Source of the DNA: Oikopleura dioica
Taxonomy: Eukaryota; Animalia; Chordata
Length of the DNA stretch: 64,000 bases
Direction: 5' to 3'
NCBI GenBank assembly: GCA_907165135.1
Contig: OU015566.1
Location: 12,338,001-12,402,000, forward strand
Part shown: piece after piece, positions 13,300 through 26,171 of the stretch
Layout: the number at the start of each line of letters is the position of its first letter
How positions within the stretch are numbered: position 1 is the stretch's first letter
Position numbers and translations under genes: made by a program
The notes under the pieces: model-generated
Databases searched by the model: none
Told to the model about the DNA's origin: nothing
Seen by the model: the letters and a program-made list of their open reading frames with translations, nothing else

Positions 13300-14522
13300 T
13301 TAGTAGACGAAGATCTGATCGTCGGTGAATCCAAGCTCTTTCAAGTTTGGAAGACAGGCGAATTTGACCATTGGAGGGGGGCCACAGATGAGGATCATTG
13401 TGTCATCCCCAGGGATGGGAAGAGAGGTTGCACACATGTCTGAAAATTATATAAGAAGACAGTATAAAGATCATGTAAGCTCCAAACTCAAATTTGCTAG
13501 GCCCGAACGTTTTCGTTATATTTTATCACTGATAGTATCAGGTACTACCGGCAAGAGACCTAAATCAGGTTACCTTTGTTAATGAAACCAGTCTGGTACT
13601 CCCATCCTTCTTTCGGCCGGTCGACGGTGTACATAAAGTTGAATCGATCGGGATAGTCAGTCTTCACTTGTTCGATTTCTTCCCTCAGCAAAATATCTTC
13701 TTCGGTTTGGTTGGCGAACAAAAGTGAGAGTTTTGTCGATTCTGACGATTTGAAAACGTCCCTATCGAAAAAATAATCTATCTAGAAACTTTTGTGAATA
13801 GTAACTCGCCTGACAATCTGCATCATCGGCGTAATTCCGGATCCGCCAGCGATCATTCCAATATGTTTGATTCCGCTCTTTCTTGTGTTCTCATCTTTAG
13901 CAGTAGCTCCTCGGATCAAGAACTTTCCATTTCGCTGGTAAATGATTCTTCCTTTCGGGCCTGACACGGAAATTTTATCTCCAAGTTGCATTTTGTTCAA
14001 ATACTGGGTCATTTTGCCGCCTTCAGGAAATCGTTCGTTTGGAAGATAAACCTAGAAAATCGCGGTTTTTGAGCATCGATGAAATCAGCAAGTTCTACCT
14101 TTATCAAAAGATCGACGAATCCCAGATCATCATCGGACGAAATCGGTGTGTAGGAACGAATAACAAGCTTTCCATCAATCTTGGCCTTTAGGTTGATGTG
14201 TTGGCCAACGGGCAGTCCCAAGCGATGACCTTCTTTCAATCCAAAGCGGAAAATTTTTGTATCGTGAGAGATTTCCGTCACCTAAACAAATCGGTAACCC
14301 TTTCTGTTTCTTTTTGCCCTTGAAATGTACCTTGATAAGAGGCAGCTCGACAGAATCGTTCGGGTTGACAGAAAGAGTCCTTGGAGTGGTCCTATGGTAT
14401 CCTTTCTTATTCGAAGCATATTTCACCGCCAAATAGACGGCTCCGAAAATGCCGAAAACTCCGGCGAGCATCGGTCCCGGCCCAGAGAGAAAGGACAGTC
14501 CAGTTCCTTTTTTCTCTAGCAT
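13300..14522 (-). CDS. CYB5R: NADH-cytochrome b5 reductase with N-terminal membrane anchor, multi-exon
   Basis: [39 protein letters not shown]. Confidence 0.95.
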
Positions 14523-15237
14523 TTTTTCTAAAAATGAATGAGTTAGATTGACCATTTGGCGCTAGAATCGGACTTAAGAGAACTTTCAACTGGATAATTT
14601 CTCTTTTCTCGCATGAAAATCATTCTTTCTTCTAACTCTACGAAAATCTCTTAATAAAAAGTAGTCATTTTTACGAGTTCGAGGGGACTAAATAAATCGA
14701 GTCGGAGGGACACCAAAATGTTCCGTTGCTGGAGCGAAGAAAAGTGCGGCGCCACGATTGGCTCCGCGGATCTTTCTTTTTCTTTTCATTGCGTCAATTT
14801 TGCGAAAATATGCCTCGAGAGAAAGTTCGCGGCGCTTTCACACTAGAAAGTTTTTTACATTAATTATTTTTTCAACAATTTTATTCATTAGAAATAGATT
14901 TCCGTTAAAGTGACAGTAGAAATAATTTTATACCAACTAACAGCTCACTGGCCTTGGTATACAGGCGTAAATCATTTCATAGATAATTTTATCTTCGATG
15001 CAGTGAGAAATTAATCTTCTTAAAATTATCTTTAAACTTCCTGAGAATACTTCAGTATCAACTTCAATTCACTGTGAATTTCATTGTGTCATTTAATATC
15101 TTAGAAAATCCAGCCTAGCAAACTTTTATACTTCTTTGCCAGGCAAAGTTTGTCTAGCTATGCCGCCCTCTAGTTGTCCCACTTCTTCCCCTCGAATCTC
15201 CCGTCAGGCAAATTTGGTAACCCAAATCTTCTTCAGA

Positions 15238-18145
15238 ATGAAATTGTTTGGTTTGGGCCTAATCGGCCTCCTTAACTCCCCGCTTGGCGTAACTGCCGAT
15301 GCCAACGAAGATCTCGAAGCCCAGCGAAAACAAGTTCTGAAAGAAAATCTGAAGAAAATGAAAGAAACTCACACGAAGGAAGAACTCAAAGAAATCGAAA
15401 CCGAGCATCTGAAAAAAGCGCACAAGGAGCAACTCAACAAAATGGCGGCCAACGGGGCTAAACATGCTTTTGACCATCTTTCGCATTTGAGCGAAAAAGA
15501 CAAAATGAAAGTTCTTGCGGCTCAAGCTGGCCAAGGATGTCCAGTTGCCAGGGCAGAATTGACGAGAATGGTCGAGGCGAAAAAAGAAAAGGAAGCGGCG
15601 AGAGCTGCAGTCTTGAAAATGAGCTCGAAAGAGCTGAAAGAAAAGGCGGCTGAAGGATGCCCTTACGCCAAGAAACGTCTAATCGGTAATAGAAAAAAAA
15701 CTTTTTCTCTCTACAAACCCCTTTAGAATTGAAGAAAAAAGTCGCCGAAAAGAAGCTCGAAGAAGCAAAAGCCGCCGTCGGAGACCTAACAGCTGATCAA
15801 CTGAAAATCCGCGCTGCAGAAGGATGCCCTCACGCTGCCCGAATGCTCGTTGAATTCGAAAACATGCGAAAGCGCAACGAACCACCACCAATTAGCGCTA
15901 GAATTCTTCCAGAAAACGACGATGAAGAGTTCTCCATTGAGGAGTTGAAGCAAATGGCTTCGATGGGAAATGGCTTGGCGGCGGAAAAGCTGCGAGAACT
16001 CGATCCTTCTTTCTTTGAACCAAATGTGGAAGAGCTGAAGAAACGGGCCGAAGCGGGTTGCCCAGTCGCTAGAGCTCAATTGGCTTCGTTGGAGGAGGGA
16101 AAGAAGGATTCTTCCGCAGAAAATGAAAAGCCAAATGTCGAAGCGCTCAAAGCCAGGGCTGCTCAAGGCTGTCCACATGCCAAAGCAGAGCTTGAAAGAC
16201 TCCAAAAAGCAGAAGAAGCGGAAAAACCTTACGTCGAAGCCCTAAAAGCCCGTGCCGCCCAAGGTTGTCCGCATGCAAAAGCCCAACTTGAAAAGTTAAA
16301 GCTTGAAGAAGAAAAAAAGCCAAATGTAGAAGCTATGAAAGCTCGAGCTGCTCAAGGCTGTCCTCATGCCAAAGCTGAGTTAGAAAAGCTCACGAAAAAT
16401 AATGAAGAGGAAAAACCTAATATTGAAGCCCTAAAAGCCAGAGCCGCCCAAGGATGCCCCCATGCAAAAGCCCAGCTTGAAAAGCTTGAGAAAGAAGAGG
16501 GTGGCGAAGGATGCGGCTGCGATAAAGTAATCGAGGCGGGATGGAATAATCGATAAATGAATTTATTTAGGCGGACAGAAAACATTTGAAAAAACAGGAC
16601 GACGAGGAGGTCGAAATCGAAGTGGATAACTCTGAAGATCCGGCGGTTAGAGAAGAGTTTGAATTTCCAGATGATATTACTTACCCAAGGTAAATTATAA
16701 TTCTCTGCGGATAGGGATCATAATAGAGCTAGTTTGATTTGAAATACTGTTTTTCTCTGTCTTGAAATCTTACAATCTTTACTGCATAATGCTTTATTTT
16801 TGATCCCCTCAATTGGACGAGAGGGGTTATTCTATTTGAATTCGAATAAATAACAGTTTGGGGGGTCCTCGGTGAGCATATCATTGATATGACATCAAAA
16901 AAGCAGTTTCGGAGAATCTTGTTTGAGAATCTTCATTTTAAAAATTTATTTGATAAATCCATCTCAAATGGACGATGGTAAGCATCGAAAAATTTATCGC
17001 AGAAAGTCTCCCAGGAAGAAATTGAAATATTACAATCAGTATACTGATTGTTATCGTGATAAAGCCCAGAACAAACCAAAAAAGGATCGATCTAAAAATC
17101 CACTTTTCAGGCACCAGCGATACAATCAGGAAGCCCGAATTCCGGCTGGAACCTTCACGATGGGCGACAATGAAGAGTTAATGCCTGGCGATGGTGAAGC
17201 TCCGGAACGACAAGTTACGATCTCGTCAGATTTCTTTATTGGTAAATCTACAGACCTGGGGCCAATCGTTTTGACGGATTTATATTCTAGATAAATATGA
17301 GGTAACGAACAGCGAGTTTTATCGTTTTGCTCACGAGACCGGCTATGTTACGGAAGCGGAAAAGTTCGGCGATTCATTTTGCTTCATCAATTTCATCCCT
17401 GAGAAGACAAAAGAAAAGATCGAGCTAGAAGTGAAAGAAACTCCTTGGTGGTTGCCTGTCCAAGGCGCAAGCTGGCTCCACCCAGTTGGCCCGGAAAAGG
17501 ATCTTACGGGCATTTGGGATCATCCTGCTGTTCATATTAGCTGGAATGACGCTGTTGAATACTGCAAGTGGGCTGGTAAACGACTCCCGACAGAGGCAGA
17601 ATGGGAATATGCTTCGCGAGGCGGCTTGGAAGGTCGACTCTTTTCATGGGGAAACAAGGACAAACCAAAGGGAATGCATTACATGAACATCTGGCAAGGA
17701 GAATTCCCCACTGAAAATACAGAGGAAGATGGCCACAGTTCTACAGGTAAATTAGCTCTTTTACTTATCAAAACAAATTGACAACTCTTTGTTTAGCACC
17801 TGTGGATTACTACCCCTCCCAGAATAAATACGGCTTGTTTAATATGCTCGGAAATGTTTGGGAATGGACGGCAGATAATTGGTCCAACAGACACTCGGGA
17901 GAAGCTGTTTCAGATCCACAAGGTAAGCCTTTTCTTCAGTTATTTATAAACAGCAATTATTACTAGGCCCACCATCCGGAACAGATCGTGTGAAGAAAGG
18001 AGGCTCCTTCCTCTGCACAACTCAATACTGCTATCGTTACAGAAACGCCGCTCGCCATCACAATACGCCCGATTCTTCCGCTCAAAATTTAGGGTTCAGA
18101 TGCGCTAGAACCGCGAATTCGAAATCAGTCCACGACGAACTGTAA
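15238..18145 (+). CDS. SUMF1: Formylglycine-generating enzyme (SUMF1) with a large N-terminal Gly-Cys-Pro repeat extension; 7 exons, 752 aa
   Basis: Exons 15238-15685, 15727-16526, 16571-16689, 17111-17241, 17291-17746, 17797-17922 and 17967-18145, all GT-AG, total 2259 nt in one open frame. Motifs: [58 protein letters not shown], terminal HDEL. Confidence 0.88.
15520..16500 (+). repeat. Coding repeat array: 8 x [L-K-x-R/K-A-A-x-G-C-P-H/V/Y-A-x-x-x-L] plus 2 Cys-less degenerate units
   Basis: Read directly in ORFs 15136-15726 and 15729-16556. The last four units are near-identical with a 31-32 aa period. Confidence 0.9.
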
Positions 18146-18424
18146 TTTATATTGATGCCAAAAGTGATTCACCGCTGCTCTTTTTCTTGCTAATTTTAAG
18201 ATTCTTTCAAAGCCAATATTTTTTATCAAACAAATATTCGTGCAATATTTGAAGAAAACACTGATAGTTCCTATCTTCCTAAGTTCTTATGAAAATACTC
18301 GTTCAAATCAATTCATCTTCTTTACTTCTGTACTATTTATCTATCTATCTTTCATGAATTCAGAATTGCTCAAATTTCATTCTCTCGATTCTATCTTTTT
18401 CTATTCGCTTTTAGAAATGAAAAT

Positions 18425-20541
18425 ATGCCCCTCGTAAGGAGATCGATACAGCCTCAAGACCTCTGTCGGAAGAAACTTCCAGAACATGTCGAATCGGAGC
18501 TTGAAATGGTCACAAATAACGCCCTCTGTGGCGTTATTTCTCAACTTTCAGGTAGTCTTCCTTGATTTCAGTTAATTTCCAACACCTCCTTCAAGATCTC
18601 TCCCGACACGCAGAGAATTTATTCCAAGAACTCAGCTTGGAAGCGACGAATTTTACTGATAGAGCACGGGAACTGGAAGAAAGAGTTGTAGATCTCAGCC
18701 AGCGACTTTCAATAGACAGAAACAACAACGCCGAATTAGAATTGAGAAATAGGGAAATTCAGTTTGACCGGTACATCATGGCGAGAGATACGATTCCACA
18801 ATCGCTAAAAGAAGTGTATGATCGCGCAGATGCTCCACCAGCACTAGAAAAGCTTCAGGTAAGAAATAACTGATGATTTTTTGTAAATTTTTGCAGAAAT
18901 ACCGAGACGACGGGAAAAACTGCCTGAAAATGTACACGAACCCGGACTACTTCTACCTCATTTGGCGTGAAAAGATTCAAGCCGAAAATGAAGCCGATCG
19001 AAAGAGAAAACGCGACGAACGCGAGCGCAAAAAGCAGCAACTCAAGGTAACTCTTCAGTCAACTCGTGGTACTTGAGCTTCAGCTTGTCAAAACTTTCTT
19101 TTCGGCCAATCAATTGATGGAATCTGATCGAGAATTCATTAAATATTTTTAGATTCAGAAAGCCAAGCAACCGGAGAATCCAAAACCAGCGTCGAGGCCT
19201 TACTTGTAAGAAAAGTATTCTTTAAAAACACGCTCATTTAAAATTTAAGCGATAAAAATCAAGAAAAGGGCCGAGGAAAGGAGTTCCAAAAGTCCATCAG
19301 GATCCCAGCCGACTCAACGACGTACAGAAGAGACTCGCAGCCAATTAATCCGACTTCGAATTATATGGATACACTCCCTAGGAACGGATTTCTCGCTTTC
19401 AAGATTACTGTTGATTCTACTTCAGAAGTAAGTTCAGGAGAAAATCCTCGTTCAGAAAGAAAAACTCAAATGCCAAGAAACCCCAGTCAACAACAAACCT
19501 TTCTCATCAAAGTTCAATGTCCCACGAAATGTCAAAAATGTCGATTCGCTCAACCGCCTCAGCATCTCAGATTCGCCAGCACCAACAGTCGTCTTTCCCT
19601 CAGCCTCCACCGGCTCACATTCCTCCTCCTCCAAGTAGCGGATCTTTTCCGCCACCGCCTTCAGGATCTGCATGGCCACAGCCGCCCGCTGGCTTTCCCC
19701 CTTCGCCGGCTCCGTCGCAGCTTCCTAGCTATCAGAAACCAGGAGGCATGCCTCCGGGAATGACACACTTGCCTCCTAGTAATGTGCCTCCAACTCCTCC
19801 AGCTGCTGGTGGGCCGCCACCACCACCGCCGCCTCCTGGCATTGCACCTCCTCCGGGTCCTTCGTCTGGTCCTCCTCCACCTCCTGGTCCCGCTCCCCCG
19901 CCTGCACCAGCCCCAGCTCCGGCAAAATCAGCGGTATTGACAATTCAATTGAATCCTTTCCAGAAAATCCTTTTCAGATCGTTTCACCACCAAGTGGAGC
20001 AATCCAAAAGAGCGTGGATAACCGATCGGATCTTCTTGCACAAATTCAAAAGGGCCGAGAATTGCGGGTAGCTTTCAAGCATCTTAAACAAATCTTTTAA
20101 AAATAATTAAGCGAGTGCAACGCGAAGAGAAAGCACCTCCACCAAGTTCAACAGCTGGCGGAGGCATGATGACGGCGATGATGTCGATTGATGAGATCTT
20201 GCGAACGCGTAGAAACGTCATAGAGAGCAGCTCAGGTTAGTTTATTATCGAATCGAAGCTCGTACAAAGCTTTAGCGAGTAAATTTTATGATGACTGCGA
20301 AGTCGATGATGGTGACATTGAAGAGTTCTCCTTTTTTGAGAGCGACTTTGATAGTGATGACTTAGAAGACGAGTCATTTATTATCGATTTATAGGTTGAC
20401 TAGGATTCACTAACAAGAAAACCTAAAACCATGCGAGATTCACGAAGAAGACTAAAAATGAAGACTAAATTCGATGAATTTCAATTAACTTCTATTTTAG
20501 GCGAATCTGGCAGCGAGTCCGACTCTGAATGGGACGACTGA
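18425..20541 (+). CDS. WASF: WAVE/SCAR (Wiskott-Aldrich family verprolin homologue), multi-exon
   Basis: WHD start MPLVRRSIQPQDLCR...ELEMVTNNALCGVI, YTNPDYFYLIWREK, basic region, polyproline tract, WH2 (LLAQIQKGRELR) and acidic tail ending EWDD. Confidence 0.93.
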
Positions 20542-22338: not shown

Positions 22339-22546
22339 ATGCTGGTTCTGCTGCTTTTTCGGGAACTTTCGGGAAAAAGGATTCACAAAAAAGTCTTCTT
22401 TACAATCCCATCGGATTCGAAAAGAAGGATTCGAAATGATCCCTGGTTGAAAACGCTTCTAGAAATATCCCTGGTTGGGTCTTTAAAAAACGCTTCTGGC
22501 CGATTCACAGTCTCTAGAAATATCCCTGGTTGGGTCTTTAAAAAAC

Positions 22547-25500
22547 ATGTCTCAGTCTCTAGAAACACATCGGGTTAATAAAAAAAGAAAGCCTGTGGCC
22601 ATGTCTCAGTCTCTAGAAACACATCGGGTTAATAAAAAAAGAAAGCCTGTGGCCATGTCTCAGTCTCTAGAAACACATCGGGTTAATAAAAAAAGAAAGC
22701 CTGTGGCCATGTCTCAGTCTCTAGAAACACATCGGGTTAATAAAAAAAGAAAGCCTGTGGCCATGTCTCAGTCTCTAGAAACACATCGGGTTAATAAAAA
22801 GAAAGCCTGTGGCCATGTCTCAGTCTCTAGAAACACATCGGGTTAATAAAAAAAGAAAGCCTGTGGCCATGTCTCAGTCTCTAGAAACACATCGGGTTAA
22901 TAAAAAAAGAAAGCCTGTGGCCATGTCTCAGTCTCTAGAAACACATCGGGTTAATAAAAAAAGAAAGCCTGTGGCCATGTCTCAGTCTCTAGAAACACAT
23001 CGGGTTAATAAAAAAAGAAAGCCTGTGGCCATGTCTCAGTCTCTAGAAACACATCGGGTTAATAAAAAAAGAAAGCCTGTGGCCATGTCTCAGTCTCTAG
23101 AAACACATCGGGTTAATAAAAAAAGAAAGCCTGTGGCCATGTCTCAGTCTCTAGAAACACATCGGGTTAATAAAAAAAGTACGCCTGTGGCCATGTCTCA
23201 GTCTCTAGAAACACATCGGGTTAATAAAAAAAGAAAGCCTGTGGCCATGTCTCAGTCTCTAGAAACACATCGGGTTAATAAAAAAGAACGCCTGTGGCCA
23301 TGTCTCAGTCTCTAGAAACACATCGGGTTAATAAAAAGAAAGCCTGTGGCCATGTCTCAGTCTCTAGAAACACATCGGGTTAATAAAAAAAAAGAAACAA
23401 TCGCCTGTGGCCATGTCTCAGTCTCTAGAAACACATCGGGTTAATAAAAAAGTACGCCTGTGGCCATGTCTCAGTCTCTAGAAACACATCGGGTTAATAA
23501 AAAGTACGCCTGTGGCCATGTCTCAGTCTCTAGAAACACATCGGGTTAATAAAAAAAGAACGCCTGTGGCCATGTCTCAGTCTCTAGAAACACATCGGGT
23601 TAATAAAAAAAGTACGCCTGTGGCCATGTCTCAGTCTCTAGAAACACATCGGGTTAATAAAAAAAGTACGCCTGTGGCCATGTCTCAGTCTCTAGAAACA
23701 CATCGGGTTAATAAAAAAAGTACGCCTGTGGCCATGTCTCAGTCTCTAGAAACACATCGGGTTAATAAAAAAAGTACGCCTGTGGCCATGTCTCAGTCTC
23801 TAGAAACACATCGGGTTAATAAAAAAAGAAAGCCTGTGGCCATGTCTCAGTCTCTAGAAACACATCGGGTTAATAAAAAAAGTACGCCTGTGGCCATGTC
23901 TCAGTCTCTAGAAACACATCGGGTTAATAAAAAAAGTACGCCTGTGGCCATGTCTCAGTCTCTAGAAACACATCGGGTTAATAAAAAAAGTACGCCTGTG
24001 GCCATGTCTCAGTCTCTAGAAACACATCGGGTTAATAAAAAAAGTACGCCTGTGGCCATGTCTCAGTCTCTAGAAACACATCGGGTTAATAAAAAGTACG
24101 CCTGTGGCCATGTCTCAGTCTCTAGAAACACATCGGGTTAATAAAAAGTACGCCTGTGGCCATGTCTCAGTCTCTAGAAACACATCGGGTTAATAAAAAA
24201 AGTACGCCTGTGGCCATGTCTCAGTCTCTAGAAACACATCGGGTTAATAAAAAAAGTACGCCTGTGGCCATGTCTCAGTCTCTAGAAACACATCGGGTTA
24301 ATAAAAAAAGTACGCCTGTGGCCATGTCTCAGTCTCTAGAAACACATCGGGTTAATAAAAAAAGTACGCCTGTGGCCATGTCTCAGTCTCTAGAAACACA
24401 TCGGGTTAATAAAAAAAGTACGCCTGTGGCCATGTCTCAGTCTCTAGAAACACATCGGGTTAATAAAAAAAGTACGCCTGTGGCCATGTCTCAGTCTCTA
24501 GAAACACATCGGGTTAATAAAAAAAGTACGCCTGTGGCCATGTCTCAGTCTCTAGAAACACATCGGGTTAATAAAAAAAGTACGCCTGTGGCCATGTCTC
24601 AGTCTCTAGAAACACATCGGGTTAATAAAAAGTACGCCTGTGGCCATGTCTCAGTCTCTAGAAACACATCGGGTTAAAAAGTACGCCTGTGGCCATGTCT
24701 CAGTCTCTAGAAACACATCGGGTTAATAAAAAGTACGCCTGTGGCCATGTCTCAGTCTCTAGAAACACATCGGGTTAATAAAAAGTACGCCTGTGGCCAT
24801 GTCTCAGTCTCTAGAAACACATCGGGTTAATAAAAAGTACGCCTGTGGCCATGTCTCAGTCTCTAGAAACACATCGGGTTAATAAAAAGTACGCCTGTGG
24901 CCATGTCTCAGTCTCTAGAAACACATCGGGTTAATAAAAAGTACGCCTGTGGCCATGTCTCAGTCTCTAGAAACACATCGGGTTAATAAAAAGTACGCCT
25001 GTGGCCATGTCTCAGTCTCTAGAAACACATCGGGTTAATAAAAAGTACGCCTGTGGCCATGTCTCAGTCTCTAGAAACACATCGGGTTAATAAAAAACGC
25101 CTGTGGCCATGTCTCAGTCTCTGTCGGGTTAATAAAAAAAGTACGCCTGTGGCCATGTCTCAGTCTCTAGAAACACATCGGGTTAATAAAAAAAGTACGC
25201 CTGTGGCCATGTCTCAGTCTCTAGAAACACATCGGGTTAATAAAAAAAGTACGCCTGTGGCCATGTCTCAGTCTCTAGAAACACATCGGGTTAATAAAAA
25301 AAGTACGCCTGTGGCCATGTCTCAGTCTCTAGAAACACATCGGGTTAATAAAAAGTCTCAGTCTCTAGAAACACATCGGGTTAATAAAAAGTACGCCATG
25401 TCTCAGTCTCTAGAAACACATCGGGTTAATAAAAAGTACGCCTGTGGCCATGTCTCAGTCTCTAGAAACACATCAGTCGCCATGTCTCAGTCTCTAGAAA

Positions 25501-25770
25501 CACATCGGGTTAAAAAAAGTACGCCTGTGGCCATGTCTGTCTCTAGAAACACATGTTAGTGTCTCAGTCTCTAGAAACACATCGGGTTAATAAAAAAAGT
25601 ACGCCTGTGGCCATGTCTCAGTCTCTAGAAACACATCGGGTTAATAAAAAAAGTACGCCTGTGGCCATGTCTCAGTCTCTAGAAACACATCGGGTTAATA
25701 AAAAAAGTACGCCTGTGGCCATGTCTCAGTCTCTAGAAACACATCGGGTTAATAAAAAAAGTACGCCTGT
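22547..25770. repeat. Tandem minisatellite, ~54-bp unit, about 60 copies
   Basis: Unit ATGTCTCAGTCTCTAGAAACACATCGGGTTAATAAAAAAAG(AAAG/TACG)CCTGTGGCC with variable A-run length; no unique spacers. Confidence 0.97.
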
Positions 25771-26171
25771 GAATAGCCGCTCAAGCTTCAAAGCGACAGA
25801 GTCTCCCTCCTTAATAAAGGTTTTCCTACTCTGCCTGTCCCCATCCCCGCCCACACCCGTTTTTAGAAAAACTCCAGAAGATTTACTAAATCACAGCTTT
25901 ACGGTTTCGCCAATTTAGCGAAATCAAGAAGAGAAATCTGGAAATGAAAATCTGGAAATGAAAAAAGAAAGCTCATAGTTGAGAATCTGATCAAGATGAA
26001 TTTTTAGATTATAATTATTTTATTAAAACAGTAAAAGTTCCTGTTAAATGCCATTCCTGCAAAAACAACGAATTTGAAAACAAGATGCCAACTCAAAGAC
26101 GAGGAAAGCACCCGGGGTAGAAGCTCATTTTATCTTTATTTCTTATCCCATGCAAAAGTACTTTAAAATTT

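Follow-up and report, generated by a model that had tools for sequence, protein, structure and literature searches.

In the 64,000-nucleotide stretch of Oikopleura dioica DNA analyzed here (hereafter the window), positions 15238–18145 hold a gene of seven exons on the forward strand: 15238–15685, 15727–16526, 16571–16689, 17111–17241, 17291–17746, 17797–17922, and 17967–18145. Every intron has GT..AG borders, introns 1–6 measure 41, 44, 421, 49, 50, and 44 nt, and the joined exons add up to 2259 nt, that is, 752 codons and a stop codon. The 752-aa protein consists, in order, of a leader, eight Gly-Cys-Pro (GCP) repeats together with two degenerate ones, a CGC motif, an acidic linker, the core of a formylglycine-generating enzyme (FGE, SUMF1), and a C-terminal HDEL. 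An earlier reading of the same DNA, made from the letters alone (the sequence-only reading), had joined seven GT–AG exons into a single 752-aa frame, and both the splice borders and the in-frame join agree with it; the translated exons likewise confirmed its order of eight Cys-bearing and two degenerate repeats followed by GCGC, FGE, and HDEL.

A probable trans-splice acceptor (ttcttcAG, with the ATG after 1 nt) lies at 15235–15237 of the forward strand, as suggested by relatives, in which the cDNA L013 has the spliced leader 4 nt ahead of the ATG and three transcripts (P0003, P0175, and P0184) open with the translated leader. The first 20 residues (15238–15297) form a predicted ER signal peptide, as read by eye. 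It is kept in P0017, P0176, and L014; the last two carry an extra CPAC (CxxC) at the predicted mature N-terminus. At the other end, the HDEL ER-retrieval signal and the stop codon occupy 18131–18145. Comparison of the window with the relative L006 gave a dN of 0.17 and a ratio of approximately 0.07 with dS saturated, which indicates that the gene is under constraint.

The FGE/SUMF1 catalytic core is encoded by exons 4–7 (17111–18109, forward strand), which are separated by introns at 17242–17290, 17747–17796, and 17923–17966. Pfam PF03781 covers these exons from profile position 4 to 255 (best exon E-value, 2.2e-37), the core is approximately 60% identical to human SUMF1, and exon 5 matched human SUMF1 structures at 2.6e-65. 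Alignment to the structures 5ssy and 1y1e placed the Cu(I)-binding catalytic Cys pair at C710 and C715 (18014–18031), which correspond to human C336 and C341; both active-site Cys are thus kept, and the catalytic segment aligns to human GGSYMCHRSYCYRYR. Judged by its sequence, the protein is an ER-resident formylglycine-generating enzyme. It shares with animal FGE/SUMF1 (1Y1E, 2AIJ, and 5SSY) the PF03781 core, both catalytic Cys, the ER leader, and a lumenal extension in which CGC is followed by H(Q)RY..EA. However, it is twice as long and bears eight GCP hairpins in the extension, it ends in HDEL (HDEL or KDEL in relatives) in place of ERp44-dependent retention, and the RYSR furin site is replaced by RYNQ. 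Cys equivalent to human C218 and C346, which are partners in the two structural disulfides, are missing here as they are in an ascidian, and there is a new Cys530.

Residues 411–414 read GCGC, and the CGC motif (aa 412–414; 16512–16520, forward strand) aligns with Cys50/Cys52 of the human FGE extension (PMC7279497). The sequence-only reading had matched GCGC to the N-terminal CGC of animal SUMF1, a proposal upheld by the contexts of the motif in lynx (SCGCGTPQR), the relative L012 (DCGCGAADRK), and an ascidian (SCCGGADRK). The protein therefore carries the N-terminal extension with a Cys pair that is found in eukaryotic FGE, the ADRK context being shared by relatives and the ascidian and CGCG by mammals. 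The idea that the GCP repeats were born from this motif was considered and rejected: its CGCG(A/T)xxR(K/P) context is common to the repeat-less vertebrates and the ascidian. Intron 2 (44 nt; 16527–16570), compared with its counterparts in L006 and L014, is unusually conserved, with 43/44 positions identical in L006 despite saturated synonymous sites and about 39/44 in L014. No significant RNA fold was detected in this intron, and no Rfam match in the whole window. Exon 3 (16571–16689) encodes the acidic linker, which is predicted to be disordered in the model of a relative.

The junction between the repeat and enzyme parts, 16689/17111, is where the locus might be divided into two genes. In such an arrangement, a secreted repeat protein would end at the TAA at 16691–16693 and an FGE cistron would be trans-spliced at 17111, or, in a weaker version, polyadenylation in intron 3 would yield a repeat-only isoform. 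Read-through of the exon 3 donor does meet an immediate stop, intron 3 (16690–17110) is long (421 nt) and contains AATAAA at 16845, and the junction is spanned by sequences of relatives, not by reads of the window lineage. The RNA runs (X4–X6, bulk; X1, single-cell) came from a diverged strain carrying the same species label; each bulk run gave 40–68 reads that were 90–95% alike and mapped to exon 6 or to the gene that follows, and the exon 5/6 splice was present among the reads of this strain. However, that stop is merely the AG|GTAA donor read in phase 2, and the two closest relatives, L006 and L014, have a counterpart of intron 3 of only 41 and 42 nt, respectively, pointing to a lineage-specific expansion in the window (no further copy of intron 3 was found anywhere in the window). 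In marine metagenome contigs (L001/P0013 and L012), one uninterrupted open reading frame leads from the repeats through CGC and the linker into the beginning of the FGE core, and in L009 CGC and a repeat share a single frame with two thirds of the core. A metatranscriptome cDNA (L013) unites both parts: the 40-nt Oikopleura spliced leader, 4 nt upstream of the ATG, is followed by the leader peptide, two GCP repeats, CGC, and FGE, and two introns have been spliced out. In a cistron starting from 17111, translation would set out from the Met of TFTMG, and the product would lack a signal peptide and yet end in HDEL; a scan of 16690–17160, covering intron 3 and exon 4, for an ATG with a leader found none, and the sole signal peptide is encoded in exon 1 and HDEL in the last exon. 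The start, targeting signal, and separate mRNA expected of a downstream cistron in an operon are thus lacking, mainly on the evidence of relatives. Two genes are extremely improbable, and the single gene that the sequence-only reading had preferred is strongly supported, because the relatives show continuous frames (L001, L009, and L012), introns of 41–42 nt (L006 and L014), and the spliced-leader cDNA L013; this support comes from relatives rather than from the window genome's own RNA.

The tripeptide GCP occurs eight times in the protein (Cys101, 141, 183, 261, 298, 330, 361, and 393) versus about 0.01 occurrences expected from composition. All units are encoded on the forward strand. The Cys-less degenerate repeat 1 (aa 69–81; 15442–15480), kept in relatives as MASRGAKH or MASQGVKH, is followed by repeat 1 (GCPVAR; 15496–15588), repeat 2 (GCPYAK; 15616–15685), which stops at the exon 1 donor, and repeat 3 (GCPHAAR; 15783–15875). 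After the second Cys-less degenerate repeat (aa 226–238; 15954–15992) come repeat 4 (GCPVAR; 16017–16109) and repeats 5–8, four near-identical units in tandem (16128–16505), in which TRF detected a 96-nt period with 3.9 copies over 16118–16486. This tandem block is shorter by one copy in L006. Both Cys-less units are kept in relatives, and the counterpart of the second still has GCP in the L009 lineage.

Each repeat unit is roughly 32 aa long and forms a helix, a Gly-Cys-Pro turn, and a second helix. In an alignment of 35 repeats that were gathered by the GCP pattern, so that G, C, and P are invariant partly by construction, the residue before Cys is Gly in 35/35 and the one before that is Gln in 29/35. 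Two residues after Cys, 25 of the 35 have His and 10 a hydrophobic residue (M, V, Y, or L), so that His or Met is found in 30/35; a basic residue stands at +4 in 27/35. Exceptions to GCP seen beyond the alignment are GCQ (L006 unit 3), GCA (P0007), and the two Cys-less units. Expanded arrays have uniformly His (the window, L006, L014, L001–3, and L012) or uniformly Met (L007 and L009) after Cys-Pro, and V, Y, L, Q, and R also occur at this position elsewhere. We also compared the repeat C-P-x-A-K/R with the sulfatase C-x-P-x-R and set aside a pseudo-substrate role, which could be entertained only remotely: Pro falls at a different position in the two motifs, and the repeat unit is helical.

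Structure prediction, which the sequence-only reading had called for as a check on the repeats, returned helical hairpins. In the AlphaFold models, Cys directly precedes the second helix and Pro is its first helical residue in 6/6 repeats, which suggests that the Cys of each repeat takes the N-cap position of that helix. The CGC motif and the linker are disordered in these models. The hairpins are predicted to have no fixed packing and to form no rigid domain, because pTM was only 0.36 and 0.25. Searches of the repeat against Pfam, a PDB-sequence profile, the PDB with Foldseek, and the ESM Atlas yielded no significant family or solved structure. The Sel1 (PF08238) and TPR profiles did not match even at E-values of 1 to 10, the best Foldseek match to a Sel1-like repeat was not significant (E-value, 0.36; TM, 0.13), and the ESM Atlas neighbors scored 0.66–0.78. 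Known monothiol and CxxC active sites of thioredoxin-fold oxidoreductases of the ER and periplasm include CPHC in DsbA, CPYC in glutaredoxin, and CRFS in ERp44. The GCP units resemble these in placing a Cys at a helix N-terminus followed by Pro-His or Pro-Tyr, much like CPHC or CPYC turned into CxxA, but they are hairpins of approximately 30 aa without the thioredoxin fold or a second Cys; the models are purely helical, no Trx Pfam match was obtained, and the second position of CxxC/CxxS is Ala. The repeat is a previously undescribed family of very small helical hairpins that share a constant Cys-Pro cap.

A profile search gave 29 matches, all of them fragments of GCP-repeat FGE genes; each fragment that could be placed lay within an FGE gene, and PF03781 was the sole Pfam domain seen. 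In relatives, GCP repeats also occupy the stretch between CGC and the FGE core, and C-terminal GCP tails terminating in KDEL or HDEL follow the core in L002, L003, L012, and P0179. Two fragments, P0011 (...HDEL) and P0020 (...KDEL), suggested stand-alone ER proteins made of GCP repeats, a suggestion that was rejected on the evidence of L002, L012, and P0179, in which such sequences are FGE C-terminal tails. No GCP repeats were found in the SUMF1 of an ascidian. The GCP-repeat FGE extends beyond the genome of the window and characterizes the lineage of Oikopleura-like appendicularians as a whole. The sequence-only reading did not recognize this architecture; it indeed has no Pfam or PDB match, but it is shared by related appendicularians rather than being peculiar to this genome.

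Human FGE can activate sulfatases in cells only if C50 and C52 of its N-terminal extension are present (PMC7279497). The active-site Cys of FGE form a disulfide when oxidized and must be reduced before Cu(I) binding, and the physiological reductant is still to be identified (PMC12123546). In HO-2, two Cys-Pro motifs form a reversible disulfide with a potential of about −200 mV (PMC2742820). We propose that the array serves as a local thiol relay or reservoir that extends the role of the CGC-bearing extension, a reading that is quite possible, if short of probable. The CPAC (CxxC) of L014 and P0176 noted above also speaks for such thiol chemistry. The N-terminal extension is enlarged by eight hairpins upstream of CGC and the disordered acidic linker. 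Each hairpin would present a single Cys, placed at the second helix as its N-cap, with Pro next and then in most cases His or Met. A thiol in this position would be expected to be reactive and to have a low pKa. Because relatives place them before CGC, after CGC, or on the C-terminal tail, the hairpins may work as tethered modules for which precise geometry is unimportant. The array would keep the active-site Cys pair reduced or return it to that state, making Cu(I) binding possible in the oxidizing ER, and would supply two electrons per turnover through inter-repeat or mixed disulfides, which glutathione or PDI-type enzymes could recycle. ER retention would be left to HDEL, apart from the role of the array.

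Some observations count against a relay. Each repeat has a single Cys, so that two electrons could be relayed only by repeats working in pairs or with a thiol from elsewhere; the total of Cys is odd in some relatives (2+3); and the prevalence of His or Met after Cys-Pro noted above would more typically be seen with Cu ligands than with redox tuning.

The main rival is that the array acquires or buffers Cu(I): Cys and the His or Met two residues on, alone or between neighboring hairpins, would bind Cu(I), pass it to the bis-cysteine active site, and raise the local copper supply in the ER. FGE requires Cu(I) held by two thiolates (PMC12123546), and the frequency of His or Met at this position and the uniformity of the expanded arrays in one or the other speak for such a device; the variable copy number and free position of the repeats are as a buffer would show. 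The invariant metal-site motifs CPH and CPC of copper P1B-ATPases are likewise copper ligand sets (PMC5552934), although the likeness extends to three residues only, and the pump motifs lie in a transmembrane helix, whereas the GCP motif lies in soluble lumenal hairpins. However, V, Y, L, Q, and R are tolerated at the same position, FGE already binds Cu(I) at about 1e-17 M (PMC12123546) and needs a single ion, and the Pfam and PDB searches matched no known copper-binding fold or motif. We consider a Cu(I) device rather unlikely.

A docking or assembly scaffold is improbable in our judgment. TPR/Sel1-like hairpins would bind a nascent sulfatase, PDI, or an ERp44-type partner, or drive disulfide-linked oligomers or thiol retention, with Cys serving for mixed-disulfide tethering only. 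Such a role is in line with the binding of ERp44 by the Cys of the human extension (PMC7279497), with weak sequence matches to long bacterial NACHT-TPR proteins, and with Sel1-like or TPR proteins being the top, if weak, structural and feature matches; the GCP units share with them a two-helix unit of roughly 32 aa and the A..AxxG-x-x-x-A...L pattern. None of these matches was significant, however (Foldseek E-values above 0.3, neither Pfam profile detected, and the Atlas scores given above), and the GCP units differ from Sel1-like and TPR repeats in their much shorter first helix, in the replacement of the Asp/Asn cap by Cys-Pro, and in lacking a predicted superhelix, no solenoid packing being predicted at a pTM of 0.36. 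Moreover, HDEL or KDEL is already there, making thiol retention unneeded, and the fact that almost every unit strictly retains its Cys argues for a chemical role, beyond shape.

A reading in which the Cys-Pro units would serve as heme regulatory motifs, tuning FGE by sensing or binding heme within the ER lumen, is very improbable. The Cys-Pro core that defines such motifs, often followed by a hydrophobic residue or His, is present in 8/8 window units, but the basic residue that should precede this core and the hydrophobic one that should come behind it (PMC2742820) were not found as a pattern in the 35-repeat alignment, an invariant Gln/Glu-Gly replaces the usual basic residue, and the motif lies at a helix cap, not in a loose segment. 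The Cys-Pro motifs of HO-2 also recur within a flexible region of their enzyme, but even they work as a disulfide switch (PMC2742820), and the GCP units differ from them in their flanks (Gln-Gly before, His/Met after) and in their lumenal, helix-cap location. Nothing in the GCP units points to heme. We know of no tie between FGE chemistry and heme. Of the roles that the sequence-only reading had suggested for the array (copper buffering, redox relay, or heme sensing), thiol or Cu chemistry is favored over heme. That the GCP array is a built-in supply of electrons, Cu(I), or both, in the form of tethered reactive thiolates, allowing FGE to turn over in the oxidizing ER without a separate partner, is possible, though we hold it with considerable reserve.

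All sulfatases require FGE, the loss of which leads to multiple sulfatase deficiency; the enzyme is also used for producing aldehyde-tagged proteins and is an unusual mononuclear Cu(I) oxidase. While the enzyme family is known, the GCP hairpin array attached to it is new. Open questions on FGE concern its cellular reductant (PMC12123546) and the in vivo need for the Cys-bearing N-terminal extension. A lineage that multiplies a Cys module at the extension and on the C-terminal tail, with retention provided by HDEL or KDEL, is a natural experiment in which retention is separable from chemistry, and simple constructs with and without the repeats, or with Cys replaced by Ser, would suit it. If the array is indeed a built-in supply, this natural fusion would offer a direct handle on the reductant and the copper route of FGE in all animals.

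The formylglycine-generating enzyme (FGE, SUMF1) gene lies on the plus strand (15238–18145) and consists of seven exons (15238–15685, 15727–16526, 16571–16689, 17111–17241, 17291–17746, 17797–17922, and 17967–18145) separated by introns of 41, 44, 421, 49, 50, and 44 nt, all with GT..AG ends. When the region 14800–18600 was read, the joined exons amounted to 2259 nt (752 codons plus a stop). The predicted protein opens with a hydrophobic leader, which is followed by a helical region rich in Lys, Glu, and Ala that contains eight Gly-Cys-Pro (GCP) units (cysteines at residues 101, 141, 183, 261, 298, 330, 361, and 393) and two Cys-less units, then by GCGC (residues 411–414), an acidic linker corresponding to exon 3, the FGE core (exons 4–7), and HDEL at the end of the last exon. 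The last four GCP units form a 96-nt tandem array (TRF). Pfam PF03781 spans exons 4–7, and exons 1–3 gave no Pfam match. Exon 5 matched human SUMF1 structures at 2.6e-65, and both catalytic cysteines are intact, with a 15-residue segment aligned with human GGSYMCHRSYCYRYR. Exon joining, TRF, Pfam, and the SUMF1 structures bear out the sequence-only reading of a single 752-aa frame in all its parts, from leader to HDEL. The upstream neighbor (14012–14561, minus strand), whose N-terminal region is cytochrome-b5 reductase-like by eye, is transcribed divergently, and therefore the FGE gene heads its own transcription unit. Elsewhere in the window, a long run of open frames (22487–25915, plus strand) with the repeated peptide KHIGLIK..PVAMSQSLETHRVNKK... 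appears to be a tandem-repeat gene or a satellite-like array.

If intron 3 (16690–17110) is left unspliced, the exon 3 frame meets TAA at 16691–16693. Reads of RNA runs under the same species label, which are 90–95% alike to the window with differences at third codon positions, cover exon 6 and the next gene only, and the exon 5/6 splice was seen in that diverged relative. Runs X4–X6 differ from the window at approximately 5–10% of positions, mostly third codon positions (17688–17995 and 18150–18900), and deeply diverged lineages (cryptic species) seem to share this one species label.

Exon 2 was searched against 1.84 billion representative proteins, and the contigs of the matches were then examined. 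The search returned approximately 20 short ORF fragments of marine metagenomic or metatranscriptomic origin, along with weak matches to unrelated repeat proteins. In contig L001, a leader exon precedes one ORF encoding two GCP units, GCGCDKADRK, a linker, and TYPDKRYNQEILIPKG, followed by a 44-nt intron inside IPxG/TFTMG and then FGE. L012 has this layout within one exon and adds three GCP units at the C-terminus and KDEL, while in L009 five GCP units are followed by a single ORF for DCGCGAADRK, a sixth unit, a linker, and two thirds of the FGE core. L002, L003, and L004 encode two GCP units, the CGC motif of the animal SUMF1 N-terminal extension, and FGE; L004 stops within the core, L002 and L003 have three additional C-terminal units, and L002 ends with KDEL. 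The end of an FGE core, two GCP units, and HDEL share one ORF in P0179. The closest relatives, L006 (approximately 75% nucleotide identity over exons 2–3) and L014 (73% protein identity over exon 2), share the exon layout of the window, with an intron 3 of 41 and 42 nt, respectively. The metatranscriptome contig L013 starts with a template-switch tag, a complete 40-nt spliced leader identical to that given for Oikopleura dioica (PMC6883708), AGTT, and ATG; a leader peptide, two GCP units, CGC, and FGE follow, and two introns of the L002 gene are spliced out. Transcripts P0003, P0175, and P0184 start with the translated leader THPIFESDFDCLT, and in P0177 exons 1 and 2 of the L001 lineage are seen spliced together. 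Mini-introns, relatives with a spliced leader, and the strong divergence of the runs under the same label are in keeping with an Oikopleura-type appendicularian. A hypothetical cistron from 17111 would start at the Met of TFTMG without a leader, although the last exon ends with HDEL, and no ATG with a signal peptide was found in intron 3 of the window. The continuous ORFs (L001, L009, and L012), the short intron 3 of L006 and L014, and the L013 cDNA support, through relatives, the earlier proposal of one gene; separate genes for a repeat protein and FGE are highly improbable. A repeat-only isoform might also arise via polyadenylation at AATAAA (16845).

Intron 3, which is unique in the window, is 421 nt long versus 41–42 nt in the two closest relatives and holds this AATAAA and a 13-nt palindrome (17029–17054); it may represent inserted sequence or provide an alternative 3' end. 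Intron 2 (16527–16570, 44 nt) is identical at 43 of 44 positions in L006 and approximately 39 of 44 in L014, whereas conservation is absent from introns 1 and 3 and flanking synonymous sites are saturated. If it were retained, the frame would close with ...GCGCDK-VI(E/D)AG(W/Y)NNR-stop, and the product would be a repeat-only protein that lacks both FGE and HDEL. At this position, other lineages have no intron. No significant RNA fold was found for intron 2 (z 0.09), and the window contains no further copies of it.

The GCP unit was characterized with 35 non-identical units from eight loci, which were picked by the GCP pattern, so that G-C-P invariance is partly built in. Their consensus is [KD]P.[IV]E.LK.RAAQGCP[HM]AKA.L..[LM]. 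Counted from Cys, L or M at −8, A at −4, and L at +7 occur in all 35 units, A at +3 in 34, and K or R at +4 in 27, while +2 is H (25), M (5), V (3), Y (1), or L (1). A fragment alignment (A1) independent of this collection also has nearly invariant G, C, P, and A, and orthologous units kept across the window, L006, and L014 lend independent support. Departures are GCQ (L006 unit 3), GCA (P0007), and two Cys-less units. Between the window and L006, dN is 0.17 against saturated synonymous sites (pS approximately 0.73), which indicates strong purifying selection. Copy number is eight in the window, nine in L014 (which also has CPAC at the N-terminus), six or more in L009, and two N-terminal plus three C-terminal in L002, L003, and L012. 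CPAC, a CxxC motif, directly follows the predicted signal-peptide cleavage site in L014 (336–914) and P0176, where exon 1 also holds one more GCP unit; neither feature is present in the window.

A repeat profile searched against a 5.8-billion-protein collection matched 29 proteins, all fragments of such FGE genes and with FGE as their sole Pfam domain, and ascidian SUMF1 (Phallusia, P0079) has the extension SCCGGADRK without GCP repeats. Hence, the module is an addition to FGE in appendicularians. Two secreted-looking, bacterial-looking proteins of the representative library (P0022 and P0028, 372–382 aa; no Pfam family) have repeats such as EKGCEASKAQLTALKKAAGTECSQELLTKV and resemble the GCP unit in a shared pattern, GC..(S/A)KAQL..L (E approximately 1e-5 to 1e-4), which may reflect convergence or distant relationship.

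The structure prediction that had been proposed, an AlphaFold model of exon 2 (pLDDT 84, pTM 0.36), gave confident hairpins in which a turn of three residues joins a helix of 9 residues to one of 15–29 residues, with no fixed overall arrangement; in six of six units, Cys directly precedes and caps the second helix, which starts with Pro. Locally, the two-repeat module of a relative folded in the same way, with CGC and the acidic linker disordered (pLDDT 60, pTM 0.25). In a Foldseek comparison with the PDB, no match fell below E 0.3 and Sel1-like repeat proteins ranked first, and an Atlas feature search gave only weak neighbors (scores 0.65–0.78), with unnamed or putative ankyrin-repeat clusters first and Sel1/TPR clusters lower. 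Against PDB sequences, the profile returned a single row, a chance-level GCPxA in the MyT1 zinc finger (E 0.94). We interpret the unit as a TPR/Sel1-like hairpin with Cys-Pro in place of the usual Asp/Asn helix cap, outside the Sel1 and TPR families proper. The architecture had been described as unrecognized, and the repeat indeed matches no family library, while the enzyme itself is a clear FGE.

In the core, each of the two structural disulfides known from human FGE has lost one partner (C218 to S and C346 to N), the other halves (C591 and C739) are kept, and Cys530 is new (exons 5 and 7; residues 530, 591, 720, and 739). The equivalent losses are seen in Phallusia and are absent from FGE of frog, lynx, and copepod, which suggests a rearranged disulfide pattern in tunicate FGE. 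The mammalian furin context HRYSR|EA is HQRYNQEA in the window (17111–17135) and DKRYNQEI or ARRYNEEV in relatives; with the site thus altered, the N-terminal extension probably stays attached rather than being clipped off.

FGE holds Cu(I) by two active-site thiolates, which form a disulfide under oxidizing conditions and must be reduced before copper binding, and each turnover takes two electrons from an external reductant whose identity in vivo has yet to be established (PMC12123546). In human FGE, both cellular activity and ERp44-based retrieval depend on the N-terminal extension with C50 and C52 (PMC7279497). The window protein and its relatives instead have HDEL or KDEL for retrieval; nevertheless, CGC is kept, and flexibly tethered single-cysteine modules flank the core at either end. 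In the simplest interpretation, the modules amplify what the extension does chemically. Heme sensing by the array is very unlikely, and a scaffold or partner-binding role is improbable. The main rival, capture and handover of Cu(I), is unlikely but fits the His/Met preference at +2 and the CPH/CPC motifs of copper pumps; V, Y, L, Q, and R variants at +2 speak against it. We tentatively favor a local pool of reactive thiols, which would reduce the active-site pair, recycle the enzyme, and itself be regenerated by glutathione or enzymes of the PDI type. A thiol pool is in keeping with HO-2, in which two Cys-Pro motifs form a reversible disulfide (near −200 mV), and with CPAC at the mature N-terminus of some relatives. 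A literature search found no paper linking Oikopleura with SUMF1 or FGE. The enzyme is a known one; the novelty lies in the accessory GCP module and in the freedom with which it is placed around the core.
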